Sequence record: NC_028999.1
Direction: 5' to 3' (one strand)
Length of the DNA: 64,000 nucleotides
Of this stretch, positions 7,173 through 57,938 are shown one piece after another. Each line of letters begins with the position of its first letter. Within the stretch, counting starts at the first letter, position 1. Made by a program: the position numbers and the translations under genes. Under the pieces are notes generated by a model. The model saw nothing but the letters and a program-made list of their open reading frames with translations, had not been told where the DNA came from and ran no database searches.

Positions 7173-7438
7173 TGTATCCGTTCGCTATTGCGGTTAGTCA
7201 CGTGATCGCTGTATTCCTCGTCGTCTACGCTGTTGGTGGTATGGTCATTACAGCTCGTCACGTCATTGCCTTCGAGCGAATAAAACGTTTGTTCGCTGAA
7301 GGGAAACTCCAGGAGGTTATCGCCTTTCGAAAGATGACTAAGTACGATACCCAGATGGATGGCCTGACGTATTGGTGTTGTTGGGGGTTGGGTATTACAA
7401 TCGCGATGTTGATCATTGCTGCGGGGTTAGCGCCATGA
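7172..7438 (+). CDS. Membrane protein (2 TM)
   Basis: Two hydrophobic segments; TGATG coupling. Confidence 0.8.
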   Translation: MYPFAIAVSHVIAVFLVVYAVGGMVITARHVIAFERIKRLFAEGKLQEVIAFRKMTKYDTQMDGLTYWCCWGLGITIAMLIIAAGLAP

Positions 7439-7818
7439 GATATGAAACCTGGATTAACGCCTATCTAGCGGCTATTGAAACGTTGCGCAAGCGTCATGGA
7501 TTGCGTGCGTATTACGACAAGCCGCTGGTTGAGCCGTACTACGAGCTGGAATTCAAAATGTTCAGTAAGCCTGATGAACCTCCAGCATACCTGGTCGCTT
7601 TCATGTACGAAGGACAACGGATCCAACTCCTGGTATTTGAGAATGATTCAGGTATTCAAGGACAGTTGTATAGCCTAGCTGCTGAACTTGGCGTTGCGAT
7701 CGATTTTGACCGTGATCCTTTTGGGGCTGACACTGTATTGGTTAATACACTTGGTCCATTCGTTAAGTTGATCCACCATCTGGTATTGGATGGTTACGGG
7801 GGACGGAATGCACTATAA
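7435..7818 (+). CDS. Hypothetical protein
   Basis: ORF track; start trimmed to MRYETW. Confidence 0.75.
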   Translation: MRYETWINAYLAAIETLRKRHGLRAYYDKPLVEPYYELEFKMFSKPDEPPAYLVAFMYEGQRIQLLVFENDSGIQGQLYSLAAELGVAIDFDRDPFGADTVLVNTLGPFVKLIHHLVLDGYGGRNAL

Positions 7819-8621: not shown

Positions 8622-8827
8622 CATCACGCTTAGCGCCACCTCCTCCACCGGGTTCTATTCTGGTGAAGGATGTACGAGATCACATCCAGGAGATGGTTGC
8701 ATCGGAAATGGGTCCGATCGAGAATGCTTGGAAATTGGAAGACTGTAAGTACATACCCAAGGCTGGGCTGGCTCTACTACAGGAAGACATCCACAAGCTT
8801 CTACGTAAACACTTTCGAGGAGAATAA
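8615..8827 (+). CDS. Hypothetical protein
   Basis: ORF track; tiles the operon. Confidence 0.65.
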   Translation: MVASRLAPPPPPGSILVKDVRDHIQEMVASEMGPIENAWKLEDCKYIPKAGLALLQEDIHKLLRKHFRGE

Positions 8828-8829
8828 CC

Positions 8830-9189
8830 ATGAGCATCACTCTGAACCAACCGCTGGTCCCTGCACTCCGGGAATTCATGTGGGACGTAAGTCGCTCCGA
8901 AGGGGGTATGGTGCGAACCCAAGCCGACCAAAGTGCGATCATCGATGTCGGTAGACCTGATGAAGATTTAATTGAGAATCCGACGGTCCGCGAAAACGAA
9001 GCCTACAACTACGGGGTAATTGCGGGTTCCCTGGGGTTGATGGATTACTTGGTTGACAAGGGGTATTCCATTATTGATCCGGCTGGAATCAAGGTGGAGC
9101 GAGCAGAGAACAAAAGCTTCCTGGAAACCTTCTCTGAGAAAAACTGGCTTAATGTAGCTACTGGCGAAACCGACGACGCGCCTTTCTAA
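8830..9189 (+). CDS. Hypothetical protein
   Basis: ORF track; GAGGAG RBS. Confidence 0.8.
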   Translation: MSITLNQPLVPALREFMWDVSRSEGGMVRTQADQSAIIDVGRPDEDLIENPTVRENEAYNYGVIAGSLGLMDYLVDKGYSIIDPAGIKVERAENKSFLETFSEKNWLNVATGETDDAPF

Positions 9190-45485: not shown

Positions 45486-45890
45486 ATGGCCCGCGATATT
45501 CAAGTTACTTTTACCGTACTTCCTCCACAAGTGTTGACTATTGCACTGCGTCAACATTACGTGAAGAATGCTCGTCCGGAAAAACGACGGGAAGGAGCAT
45601 TCACAGAGACCGTTGGTCAATCACGTGGATTCGGTAAAGCTATTGACTTCATGATCATCAACGGAATCGTCGAAGCAGACGAGCGACCGATGATCAAGTT
45701 CGTGTGCGACAAGACTGGTGCCAACGTTCAGTGGCAGTTCCCCTCTATTGGGAAATCGGTTACCACTGAGCAACAAGTCGTGAATCTGGTACGAGAACGC
45801 GTGTGCAAGATTCTGCTGGAATACAATCTGTTTGATCCTAAGCAGGTTGAGATGGAAAAACGTGGTTGGGAAAAGTTACTCGCAGCGTAA
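45486..45890 (+). CDS. Hypothetical protein
   Basis: AAGGA RBS; ends in LLAA. Confidence 0.8.
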   Translation: MARDIQVTFTVLPPQVLTIALRQHYVKNARPEKRREGAFTETVGQSRGFGKAIDFMIINGIVEADERPMIKFVCDKTGANVQWQFPSIGKSVTTEQQVVNLVRERVCKILLEYNLFDPKQVEMEKRGWEKLLAA

Positions 45891-45899
45891 TGATATACG
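45873..45899 (+). promoter_or_regulatory. Bipartite middle/late-type promoter
   Basis: AAGTTACTC-N12-TATACG. Confidence 0.7.
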
Positions 45900-46281
45900 T
45901 GGAAACATTTCCCAACTAGACCGAGGTTACAGCTGGACCATCTCCCCTAGGGCTTCCCGTCGCCTAAACTAGGGTGCCACCTGTGGCCTCACTTATCAAC
46001 CCTCTGCTTTCGGTGTGAGGGGTGGTCTCTCCGTATAGAGGAGAGACGCTATAGCGCAGCTCGCCAAGCTGCAAGCCGAAGCGTGATGTCTTACCTGGCT
46101 GGTATGACTAGCGAAGTTACGACGTGGTGTACTTTCCGAAGGCCAAAGGCGCCCCGGCCCATCAGAGTAGCGCTTTCGTTTTCCTTAGAGGCTGCCCTAA
46201 GCAGGCTCGCACTGGCCAGTGAGGAAAACGTCTGTATTCGAAACCAGCATAGCCCCGCCCCATCCGGGCGGGGTTTATGCC
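45894..46281 (+). ncRNA. Large structured non-coding RNA (~380 nt), family unknown
   Basis: Promoter motif upstream, terminator downstream, GC-rich, at least 10 hairpins, no ORF with an RBS. Confidence 0.7.
46247..46281 (+). terminator. GCATA-hairpin-TTTATGCC element
   Basis: GCCCCGCCC-CATCC-GGGCGGGGT. Confidence 0.85.
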
Positions 46282-46306
46282 CTTAAATATACAAGAGGAG
46301 CTTATA

Positions 46307-47041
46307 ATGTCGATTGTTGTTTATGATGGTGAGAATCTGCTGGTAGATAAGATCACCACTGCTACCCACGACCATTATCGAAAGGTAGATGGTAAGGATG
46401 TCGAGTACTATTCTGAACTCGACTGCAAAATAAATTTCCCCAAAGGGGCGGACACCTTCAACAATAAGCTCTATGGTCGTACCGTCTCTGCTTACACGTT
46501 AGTTGGTGACACCCGAGATCAACATCGGGTAATGTTCCTACTCAACTCTGAAGTCGTGATCGACCTGCGCTGTATTTCCGATACGGCAGTGGCCTGGCCG
46601 GAGATAGGCGTATTGTCCCCTGAGACCACCCACCTTTTCATCAATGAGGATGGCGGCCTAATCGAAATGACCATGGAGATTGATCCGGATAAGGGGACCT
46701 ACAAGGTCATCGATAATATTTATCACCCAGAGAGCTTGGCTAAGGTAGGTCCGGCGGTCTTTGGCCAGCCTTCTGCCTTCCTCAACAGTTACAACCGTCA
46801 CCTGCTCCGTCGTAATTTCACTGCGTTGGAACTGATGGTGTTCGGCATGTCTCGTTATCCAGGCCTGGGACGTCGCTTCGATCATTGGCATCGCCCTACT
46901 GGCAAACTGACCAAGGATATCCTGCTGTCGGATAGGCAGCGTAGACATATTCTAAATAAGATCGCAAAGGATTCGGCACTTGTGGACCTAGCGCCGGTGA
47001 AAACACTACAGGAGTTGTACACCGATGAGAAGCTTACCTGA
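46307..47041 (+). CDS. Hypothetical protein, possible Ntn-hydrolase-like fold
   Basis: GAGGAG RBS; MSIVVYDGENLLVDK N-terminus; HLFINEDGGL. Confidence 0.75.
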   Translation: MSIVVYDGENLLVDKITTATHDHYRKVDGKDVEYYSELDCKINFPKGADTFNNKLYGRTVSAYTLVGDTRDQHRVMFLLNSEVVIDLRCISDTAVAWPEIGVLSPETTHLFINEDGGLIEMTMEIDPDKGTYKVIDNIYHPESLAKVGPAVFGQPSAFLNSYNRHLLRRNFTALELMVFGMSRYPGLGRRFDHWHRPTGKLTKDILLSDRQRRHILNKIAKDSALVDLAPVKTLQELYTDEKLT

Positions 47042-49452: not shown

Positions 49453-49541
49453 TGGCGGAAGCGCAGAGATTCGAACTCTAGGGGCCCTTTGGACCCGTCT
49501 GATTTCAAGTCAGGTGCCTTAAACCACTCGGCCACGCTTCC
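49453..49541 (-). tRNA. tRNA-Ser(TGA)
   Basis: GGAAGCG acceptor, CT-TGA-AA loop, long variable arm, TTCGAAT, encoded CCA. Confidence 0.95.
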
Positions 49542-49652: not shown

Positions 49653-49729
<77 letters not shown>

Positions 49730-54025: not shown

Positions 54026-54111
54026 TGGTGGTTGAAGGAAGGAATTGAACCTCTAGCCTAGGCGGGGGTGTTACAGACCCCTGACAGTAGCCATCTGTCT
54101 ATACATCAACC
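54026..54111 (-). tRNA. tRNA-Tyr(GTA), non-canonical
   Basis: GGGGT-CT-GTA-AC-ACCCC, variable arm, TTCAATT, ACCA end; atypical D-arm and acceptor. Confidence 0.8.
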
Positions 54112-57844: not shown

Positions 57845-57850
57845 TTATTA

Positions 57851-57890
57851 GGGAGCCCTTCGGGGCTCCCTTCTATATCTTTTTTCTTTT
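57851..57890 (+). terminator. Intrinsic terminator
   Basis: GGGAGCCC-TTCG-GGGCTCCC followed by a T tract. Confidence 0.9.
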
Positions 57891-57900
57891 TGTCTGATAC

Positions 57901-57938
57901 GACATAAAGGAAGTAGCCACCGCTACTTCCTTTATTTA
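57901..57938 (-). terminator. Terminator after tRNA-Leu
   Basis: ATAAAGGAAGTAGC-GGTG-GCTACTTCCTTTAT-GTC. Confidence 0.85.

Follow-up and report, generated by a model that had tools for sequence, protein, structure and literature searches.

What occupies the unannotated gap between gp354 (45486-45890) and gp355 (46307-47041) of the Pseudomonas aeruginosa jumbo phage PhiPA3 (HQ630627, Miltoncavirus)? The window analysed here is the final 64 kb of the PhiPA3 record, which it matches at 100% identity; all positions are window coordinates, window base 1 being record base 245209, and the gap spans 45891-46306. A sequence-only reading of this DNA had proposed that 45894-46281 encodes an undescribed, large, heavily structured phage non-coding RNA of ~380 nucleotides (nt), standing alone with its own promoter and terminator and perhaps serving as a scaffold, decoy or ribozyme. 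Comparison with related phages supports the essence of this proposal: the gap holds a predicted ~380-nt non-coding RNA gene that is a member of a family found in phiKZ-like phages. Evidence that it is an undescribed structured RNA comes from negative Rfam and ARAGORN searches, the lack of a conserved open reading frame (ORF), and covariation in both a core and a 3' extension. The description 'large' needs amending. A long form does exist, but the evolutionarily fixed part is only an 80-nt core, and the remaining ~250 nt are accessory and absent from phiKZ, Psa21, Phabio and others.

The RNA is G+C-rich relative to its surroundings, at 55-57% against 44-49% in the adjoining flanks (200-nt windows), slightly below the 58-60% first counted. 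The z score of its minimum-energy fold is -2.74 for the + strand and -2.40 for the - strand; by itself the folding energy of the region is therefore suggestive, only moderately out of the ordinary and not decisive.

An 80-nt core is present once in each of twenty phages

The search for homologs and covariation that the sequence-only reading had suggested was carried out with two covariance models. In model R1 four helices were supplied by hand on four close sequences, and model R2 was rebuilt from 16 diverse matches. The PhiPA3 core scores 84.8 bits with R1 and 68.2 bits with R2, and R2 finds exactly one core per phage in 20 distinct phages: phiKZ, PhiPA3, Pawinskivirus, 201phi2-1, Viktualia, Phabio, Psa21, RVTF4, D6 and eleven uncultivated contigs. 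Across the complete PhiPA3 genome, searched in pieces, the core is single-copy. Two weak core-model matches at 57846-57938 (+ strand), beside tRNA-Leu, score 11.8-16.6 bits (E = 0.3-2) and were judged to be chance. The core and the hairpin that precedes it are made up as follows.

45901-45912, + strand: Ha, a small 5' hairpin, GGAA-ACAU-UUCC
45918-45999, + strand: universal core of four stacked helices (covariance models, 20 phages)
45923-45932 with 45981-45990, + strand: core helix P1
45934-45936 with 45977-45979, + strand: core helix P2
45945-45950 with 45969-45974, + strand: core helix P3, CCTAG/CTAGG
45951-45953 with 45962-45964, + strand: core helix P4
45940-45945, + strand: internal loop AUCUCC, invariant and unpaired, the 5' side of an asymmetric loop; family form AUCUCYC
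45954-45961, + strand: apical loop UUCCCGUC, invariant and unpaired; family form YCCCGUC
45973-45978, + strand: GGUGCC, an invariant element on the 3' side
45991-45996, + strand: tail ACUUAU; CCUA in most relatives, family form C-N-C-C-U-A immediately after P1

The most conserved positions of the core are the unpaired ones, and its helices are maintained by exchange of bases. Standard pairs fill 93.9% and 93.1% of cells in the model-based alignments of the core. Shuffling the partners lowers this to 66%, and shifting the 3' partner by 1-3 columns lowers it to 34-53%; the pairing percentages are upper bounds, because the alignments were fitted to the model and the phages are related. Compensatory change, on both sides of the pair, is seen at 17/20 core pairs, and nearly all pairs of P1, P3 and P4 occur in three or four different Watson-Crick versions. 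Ha behaves in the same way: it is GGAC/GUCC in Pawinskivirus and GAGU/GCUC or GAGC/GCUC in the 201phi2-1 group, is 100% paired, and has changed on both sides at 3/4 pairs. G.U pairs outnumber A.C pairs by 9 to 2 in the core and by 30 to 6 in the 3' extension described below, and the + strand is therefore the folded strand. Plain MAFFT alignment followed by RNAalifold gave no structure for the core across genera, because the covarying stems were misaligned.

The family has a short and a long form

By blastn with a 1.2-kb region, the sole DNA-level relatives of the locus are eight phages of the Pawinskivirus group, including PS119XW and PA1C. At 77% identity, the match covers no more than the initial 160 nt of the gap and none of the flanking genes; these phages nevertheless carry a gap of equal size at the corresponding place, and their independent folds repeat the PhiPA3 helix series. 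Further syntenic loci were collected via the neighbouring gp351/PHIKZ287 protein and then by profile search. This yielded a full-length homolog in the 450-nt gap between gp424 and gp425 of 201phi2-1 and a partial homolog in the 167-nt gap between PHIKZ288 and PHIKZ289 of phiKZ.

The short form, of ~115 nt, is found in phiKZ, Psa21, Phabio, RVTF4, D6 and most uncultivated relatives. It consists of a promoter, ~10-15 nt, the core, a 12-nt linker and a terminator, and the distance from the core to the terminator end is 27-30 nt in 9/10 short forms (no terminator was located in contig L031). The phiKZ version is 99-100% identical across 45 Phikzvirus records. The long form, of 380-480 nt, is found in PhiPA3, Pawinskivirus, 201phi2-1, Viktualia and the contigs L019, L020, L022, L039 and L151. 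Here ~250 nt lie between core and terminator, such that the core is 264-280 nt from the terminator end, and the 201phi2-1 type has ~100 additional nt ahead of the core. The two forms are interleaved among genera, PhiPA3 being long and phiKZ short, 201phi2-1 long and Phabio short, and the extension is therefore most likely ancestral and was lost several times.

Wider searches were made with sequence patterns. In IMG/VR the pattern CAAGCCGAAGC...GAAGTTACGACG matched PhiPA3 only, a three-anchor pattern returned 6 true and 8 chance loci, and a relaxed core pattern returned 88 new loci, of which 2 were true and both already known. The three-anchor pattern in metagenomes gave at least one true locus among the 120 matches listed. 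Neither the two relaxed IMG/VR scans nor the metagenome matches listed contained a family member outside the phiKZ-like Pseudomonas-phage clade; on these searches the family is restricted to phiKZ-like Pseudomonas jumbo phages.

Phabio (L007) has a second stretch of interest. Its short-form core RNA lies at 8767-8930, and ~1.3 kb away, at 7396-7592, the position of the long RNA in 201phi2-1 is taken by a non-coding stretch of ~150 nt, bounded by a promoter and a terminator and dissimilar to the core-RNA family.

The 3' extension is a covarying, multi-helix domain

For the helices of the extension, the strands were written out between invariant anchors, with loops masked with N and the register checked. 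The strands of H6 and H7 were taken mechanically from the anchors, and those of Ha, H5, the junction closing stem and hairpin B were chosen by hand. The resulting PhiPA3 map is as follows.

46000-46021, + strand: H3, hairpin CCCUC/GAGGG, whose loop holds CUUUCGG (46007-46013)
46025-46047, + strand: H4, hairpin GUCUCUCC/GGAGAGAC in a lineage-variable region, given by separate folds of PhiPA3 and Pawinskivirus
46056-46072, + strand: H5, hairpin GCAGCU/AGCUGC with loop CGCCA; 100% paired, 4/6 pairs compensatory
46063-46066, + strand: GCCA of the H5 loop, proposed partner of the H6 loop; RCCA in 11/11 long forms
46076-46082, + strand: CCGAAGC, single-stranded, invariant in all long forms and complementary to CUUUCGG (46007-46013)
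46083-46112, + strand: H6, hairpin with loop UGGCU (46096-46100); 7/7 pairs compensatory, 78.6% of cells paired
46113-46119, + strand: GAAGUUA, invariant
46113-46171, + strand: H7, GUUAC (46116-46120) with GUAGC (46167-46171) and a variable hairpin inside; 91.7% paired
46177-46230, + strand: three-way junction, also in separate folds of Pawinskivirus, L022 and others
46177-46185 with 46222-46230, + strand: junction closing stem, CGUUUUCCU with AGGAAAACG; 5/5 counted pairs change on both sides, 92.5% paired
46188-46208, + strand: junction hairpin A
46210-46221, + strand: junction hairpin B, CACUGGCCAGUG, with a GGCC loop; CUGGCC invariant, outer pairs covary
46231-46252, + strand: linker with TTCGAAA, not conserved

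Over all extension helices 90.4% of cells are paired, against 69.7% after shuffling and 31-51% when slid, and compensatory change is seen at 23/32 pairs. At H5, H6 and the junction stem, the variety of pair types owes nothing to the manual choice of helices. H3 has a compensatory version in Pawinskivirus (CCCAC/GUGGG), and the GUUAC/GURGC pairing of H7 becomes GUUAUC/GAUAGC in L022 and L019. In the 201phi2-1 group a local H3 stem is not evident and different hairpins stand at the position of H4. The strings CUUUCGG, CCGAAGC, GAAGUUA, GU(A/G)GCG and CUGGCC are invariant and keep their order across genera, by which the 3' extension is judged to be homologous between the PhiPA3 and 201phi2-1 types.

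Two long-range contacts are suggested. The loops of H5 and H6 are GCCA and UGGC in PhiPA3 and Pawinskivirus and ACCA and UGGU in 8/8 sequences of the 201phi2-1 type, the H6 loop containing UGGY in all long forms; this points to a probable H5-H6 kissing loop, for which the evidence is modest because the switch is a single compensatory one. CUUUCGG, invariant in 11/11 long forms, may also pair with CCGAAG. RNAalifold predicts this helix for the 201phi2-1 group; its formation in PhiPA3 would create a pseudoknot involving H3. Covariation cannot probe it, because both strands are invariant.

Of six stems listed in the sequence-only reading, five are kept in relatives: CCTAG/CTAGG (P3), CCCTC/GAGGG (H3), GTCTCTCC/GGAGAGAC (H4), GCAGCT/AGCTGC (H5) and CGTTTTCCT/AGGAAAACG, which is the junction closing stem. 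The sixth, GCCAC/GTGGC, falls outside the conserved fold, its bases belonging to the 3' strands of P2 and P1. The TTCGAAA segment, which had been likened to a T-loop, falls opposite a gap when Pawinskivirus is aligned, and the 201phi2-1 group has another sequence there. Neither is conserved, and both were therefore rejected.

The RNA has a predicted middle-type promoter and a predicted phiKZ-type terminator

Both ends of the predicted RNA coincide with phage transcription signals.

45871-45899, + strand: phage middle-type promoter (motif match), with an A-rich run, TACT (45877-45880), GTAAT (45887-45891) and TATA (45894-45897)
46253-46279, + strand: predicted phiKZ-type intrinsic terminator, an 8-bp G+C hairpin CCCCGCCC-CATCC-GGGCGGGG followed by TTTATG

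The promoter reads AAAAGTTACTC-N-GTAAT-N-TATACG and overlaps the stop codon of gp354 (45888-45890); transcription is predicted to start at ~45899-45901. The middle promoter of phiKZ has TACT centred 22 nt upstream of the start, with an A-rich run before it (Wicke 2020, PMC8244752), and the same element stands upstream of the RNA in all relatives, with the A-rich run, TACT and TAT(A/G) spaced as in the phiKZ middle promoters. A strict pattern, TACT-N5-9-TAAT-N1-4-TAT, was found at three places in the window (0.53 expected), a number reached by 0/100 shuffles. Its second site (54490-54471, - strand) lies ~130 nt upstream of tRNA-Asn, bearing out the likeness to the tRNA-Asn operon promoter that had been noticed from the sequence, and its third precedes another non-coding unit at 59.1 kb. 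Looser versions stand ahead of tRNA-Thr and tRNA-Leu, and in 201phi2-1 a middle promoter drives a tRNA (PMC11512511). By motif, the promoter thus belongs to a class that also precedes phage tRNA genes.

On the - strand of the window, TACT...TAT(A/G) promoters of this class were noted at 54490-54471 (tRNA-Asn/Tyr), 49837-49817 (tRNA-Thr/Ser) and 58189-58168 (tRNA-Leu), the first being followed by a leader of ~130 nt before the tRNA begins. GenBank lists tRNA-Thr at 49453-49541 and tRNA-Cys at 49653-49729 (- strand), where ARAGORN instead finds tRNA-Ser (TGA) and tRNA-Thr (TGT). The tRNA-Tyr at 54030-54109 was found by ARAGORN and is not listed by the Rfam tRNA model at its gathering score. The unit at 59.1 kb (59143-58968, - strand) comprises the promoter TACTCAATATGTAATGTTATG, ~150 nt without a convincing ORF and a phiKZ-type terminator, CAGCCCCTCCTTCGGGAGGGGCTTTATG, ahead of a gene from 58912; it is probably another non-coding RNA or a leader.

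The terminator hairpin and the TTAT after it agree with the phiKZ consensus (Putzeys 2024, PMC10914365), as was first proposed for this RNA. With its short T run, the terminator escapes a generic scan. It is a self-contained perfect hairpin with no overlap with P1, and a terminator of the same kind closes every homolog except L031.

The RNA matches no known family and encodes no conserved protein

The sequence-only reading had recognised no tmRNA, RNase P or intron core and had proposed a search of all of Rfam. We scanned the entire window with Rfam 15 (4227 models, including RNase P, transfer-messenger RNA (tmRNA), 6S, group I and II introns, riboswitches, T-box, GOLLD, ROOL, HEARO, OLE and raiA), and only four tRNAs reached the gathering score. 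Between 45700 and 46500, matches up to E = 10 were limited to three chance hits of 15-16 bits, against gathering scores of 37-60, so that no family was found at the locus. The 201phi2-1 homolog gave terminator-like chance matches only. ARAGORN found five tRNAs and no tmRNA in the window.

That the locus encodes a small protein, with the structure incidental, is exceedingly improbable. A 67-amino-acid ORF (46083-46286) is open in PhiPA3, and automatic annotation places small 'hypothetical protein' coding sequences (CDSs) on the RNA in HPP-Temi, HHBS36_1 and Viktualia (L009 729-946, L013 729-854, L173 148-598). The PhiPA3 ORF, however, starts with GTG, has no Shine-Dalgarno sequence and extends through the terminator. 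Almost every frame of the equivalent stretch in ten homologs is broken by 1-6 stops; one frame is open in L151, and it holds no ORF homologous to that of PhiPA3. Such ORFs as are present are mutually unrelated and nearly all lack a Shine-Dalgarno sequence, indels between PhiPA3 and Pawinskivirus are not multiples of three, and the substitutions in the helices are compensatory. It is also very improbable that what is conserved is a DNA element, for example a site for protein binding, replication or packaging. An element of this sort would be in keeping with inverted repeats that fold about equally well on both strands in PhiPA3, as the z scores above indicate. The tolerance of G.U but not A.C in core and extension is, in contrast, specific to a + strand RNA, and across phages the element keeps a constant orientation between an upstream promoter and a downstream terminator (unlocated in L031).

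The genes on either side

Neither gp354 nor gp355 has a Pfam match. The GenBank label of gp354 (134 amino acids), 'putative phage integrase', was not supported, as neither Pfam nor PHROGs families match. The gp355 gene starts 26 nt past the predicted terminator. Its family, which includes PHIKZ289 (L005 7755-8486), begins M-(T/S)-x-I-V-x-D-G. The match of PHIKZ289 to the PHROG 'peptidase HslV family' (phrog_1040, E = 1.3e-5) suggests an N-terminal-nucleophile hydrolase of the proteasome type. The family has no Pfam or PDB sequence match. In 201phi2-1 the annotated start of gp425 falls within the 3' domain of the RNA (L006 7505-7574), and a start at the ATG at L006 7575, past AAGGAG and the terminator, appears more plausible.

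A self-contained RNA gene or a leader of the downstream operon

We give about an even chance to a stable RNA that acts in trans, offering two invariant C-rich loops to a partner. The non-virion RNA polymerase would transcribe such an RNA inside the phage nucleus during the middle stage, and the product would accumulate as a discrete, terminator-ended species. Its partner, bound by the invariant loops of the core, would be a protein of phage or host, or else G-rich RNA, for example ribosome-binding sites of the GGAGAU type. The 3' domain would be a compact accessory fold, held by the H5-H6 loop-loop contact and the CUUUCGG/CCGAAG helix; it would modulate or add to the function of the core and would have been lost repeatedly. 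AUCUCC is indeed complementary to GGAGAU-type sites, a 6-nt match that proves nothing. In the aligned long forms, judged by eye, neither AUCUCYC nor CCCGUC has a conserved intramolecular complement. A target search of the PhiPA3 genome, in which single 6-7-nt loop matches are uninformative, found no site complementary to both loops within 80 nt besides the RNA's own antisense. The loops, having neither an internal nor a bipartite genomic complement, are therefore most simply read as a recognition surface for a protein or a G-rich RNA.

The gene downstream also bears on this reading. PhiPA3, Pawinskivirus and phiKZ have an HslV-like gene there (PHIKZ289 family). In the Psa21 group the first gene encodes a small membrane protein, and in Phabio and the 201phi2-1 group it encodes an unrelated small protein. 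Across the phages the RNA keeps its promoter and terminator but not its neighbouring genes, which, like the single copy of the core, favours a self-contained RNA gene. The main rival, possible though somewhat unlikely, is a cis-acting 5' leader of the gp355 operon, whose fold, perhaps with a bound protein or ligand, would control read-through at the terminator, whether by attenuation or by processive antitermination as in put; the short RNA would be a by-product. Most homologs do show the order promoter, structured RNA, terminator and then a gene 10-35 nt on, with no room for a promoter of that gene's own. A PHIKZ289/HslV-like gene lies one or two genes downstream in 8/14 loci, the spacing of core and terminator is near-constant in the short forms, and phiKZ has 17 '5'UTR-derived ncRNA candidates' (from 5' untranslated regions) so arranged, with two transcription modes (Putzeys 2024, PMC10914365). 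Against a leader, the downstream gene is not conserved, differing in the 201phi2-1 group, Phabio, L025 and L015; the perfect terminator hairpin is separate, and neither P1 nor the tail shows an alternative, antiterminator pairing in phiKZ, Psa21 or PhiPA3; and no Rfam riboswitch or leader family matches. The 264-280 nt that separate core and terminator in long forms mean, furthermore, that a proximity-dependent coupling cannot be general. It is improbable that the RNA is instead processed or catalytic, the core being a hairpin substrate or mimic of host RNA-processing enzymes, or the long form a ribozyme or an RNA-only particle assembled via its palindromic GGCC loop. In 18/20 cores NCC(U) comes directly after P1, a likeness to tRNA acceptor ends and to substrates of RNase P. 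Promoters of the same class serve tRNA genes, the multi-domain long form has a proposed tertiary contact, and the palindromic loop of hairpin B is invariant. The RCCA and UGGY loops likewise recall the pairing of a tRNA acceptor end with a T-box or with the L15 loop of RNase P. All of these resemblances are nonetheless short motifs. PhiPA3 has ACUU rather than NCC after P1, ARAGORN and Rfam find no tRNA-like element, and no ribozyme, T-box, RNase P, GOLLD or ROOL model matches.

Several considerations weigh against the trans-acting RNA and the fold proposed for it. All sequences come from one clade, and shared ancestry inflates the shuffle statistics; the part-manual register of the extension helices inflates their paired-cell share. 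The putative CUUUCGG/CCGAAG helix is seen in invariant bases only, and the probable kissing loop in one compensatory switch. The invariant loops are too short for a meaningful target search, and the ends, abundance and stability of the RNA in PhiPA3 are predicted from motifs. With gp355 only 26 nt past the terminator, the RNA is probably also carried as a 5' leader on read-through transcripts, which probably exist because gp355 has no room for a promoter of this kind. Dual-mode transcription units are, moreover, common in phiKZ (Putzeys 2024, PMC10914365). The 'stand-alone' nature claimed at the outset is no more than likely, with a promoter and a terminator flanking the RNA.

Beyond the trans-acting RNA, a bolder and rather unlikely proposal is that the long form is a tertiary-folded RNA machine of nucleus-forming jumbo phages, whether a ribozyme, a multimer formed through the GGCC loop, or a ribonucleoprotein subunit acting on transcription, RNA export or translation, with the core recruiting the partner.

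Comparison with known systems

The general kind is already known: phages encode structured non-coding RNAs with their own promoter and terminator. What appears to be undescribed is this particular family, with its conserved core, long form and structural model. We found no mention of this RNA in the literature searched, including the papers on phiKZ differential RNA sequencing (dRNA-seq), on Oxford Nanopore (ONT)-cappable-seq of phiKZ and 201phi2-1 and on enhanced crosslinking and immunoprecipitation (eCLIP) of PhiPA3 ChmC, and a 2026 review. In the eCLIP paper the PhiPA3 transcriptome is described as unannotated and the analysis is confined to annotated protein and tRNA genes.

The ncRNA candidates reported by ONT-cappable-seq for phiKZ and 201phi2-1 (PMC10914365; PMC11512511) resemble the family in having a phage promoter, a short structured transcript and a phiKZ-type terminator before a gene. 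They differ in that the lists were filtered to <250 nt and defined by read ends rather than by conservation. One of the 17 candidates of Putzeys 2024 may be the phiKZ short form, which lies upstream of PHIKZ289 (AF399011 ~263171-263292). The sole candidate in these lists shown to be conserved across genera, a small RNA (sRNA) upstream of gp182/gp277, lies at a different locus (PMC10914365; PMC11512511).

PhiKZ, PhiPA3 and 201phi2-1 are model nucleus-forming jumbo phages, studied for their polymerases, protein shell, RNA export and use in therapy, and their non-coding RNAs are almost unexplored. An important function can be argued for the RNA described here because it is kept as a single copy in every clade member examined, despite flanking genes that have diverged beyond DNA-level recognition. 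In practical terms, the covariance model is usable for annotating new jumbo phages, and the spurious CDSs lying on the RNA in several GenBank records can be corrected.

Phage T4 encodes rnaC and rnaD, stable RNAs of undefined function, together with its tRNA genes. The PhiPA3 RNA is alike, by description and not by homology, in being a predicted stable RNA of a phage with tRNA-like expression, here through its promoter class. It is, in contrast, its own unit, 3 kb from the nearest tRNA and on the opposite strand.

The put RNAs of phage HK022 are cis-acting antiterminators of two hairpins that act on the host RNA polymerase at two operons. Like the core, they are phage RNAs of 60-80 nt with stacked hairpins and conserved loops, placed after a promoter and ahead of terminators. 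Unlike them, the core of the PhiPA3 family is single-copy, has four stacked helices and is expected to be transcribed by a phage polymerase, and in long forms of the 201phi2-1 type (~470 nt) it lies >100 nt from the start.

A T-box leader was considered and rejected: the Rfam model finds nothing up to E = 10, Stem I and a specifier loop are lacking, and the motif is not within an antiterminator that competes with the terminator. The likeness is that the H6 loop of the 201phi2-1 type, UAGGGUGGUACCUA, is near the T-box motif AGGGUGGNACC, a 12-of-14 match ~150 nt upstream of the terminator. In all long forms, furthermore, a UGGY loop faces an RCCA loop, and their R and Y covary as do the T-box bulge and the discriminator base of the tRNA. 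PhiPA3 and Pawinskivirus, by contrast, are without the extended motif. The resemblances to the T-box and to RNase P are leads only.

GOLLD and ROOL are large (~600-800 nt), often phage-borne, multi-domain RNAs supported by covariation and with no known partner. The long form shares with them a long multi-domain fold with covariation, and its palindromic loops could mediate self-association. It differs in having no sequence or structure match to their Rfam models, in being shorter (380-480 nt) and confined to one phage clade, and in that the essential part is an 80-nt hairpin that also exists alone. Long, covariation-supported RNAs with no assigned function are rare, and several have turned out to be ribozymes, riboswitches or RNA-only assemblies. 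In this family the 115-nt minimal form and the 380-480-nt form make a natural pair, a ready dissection of the core from its accessory domain.

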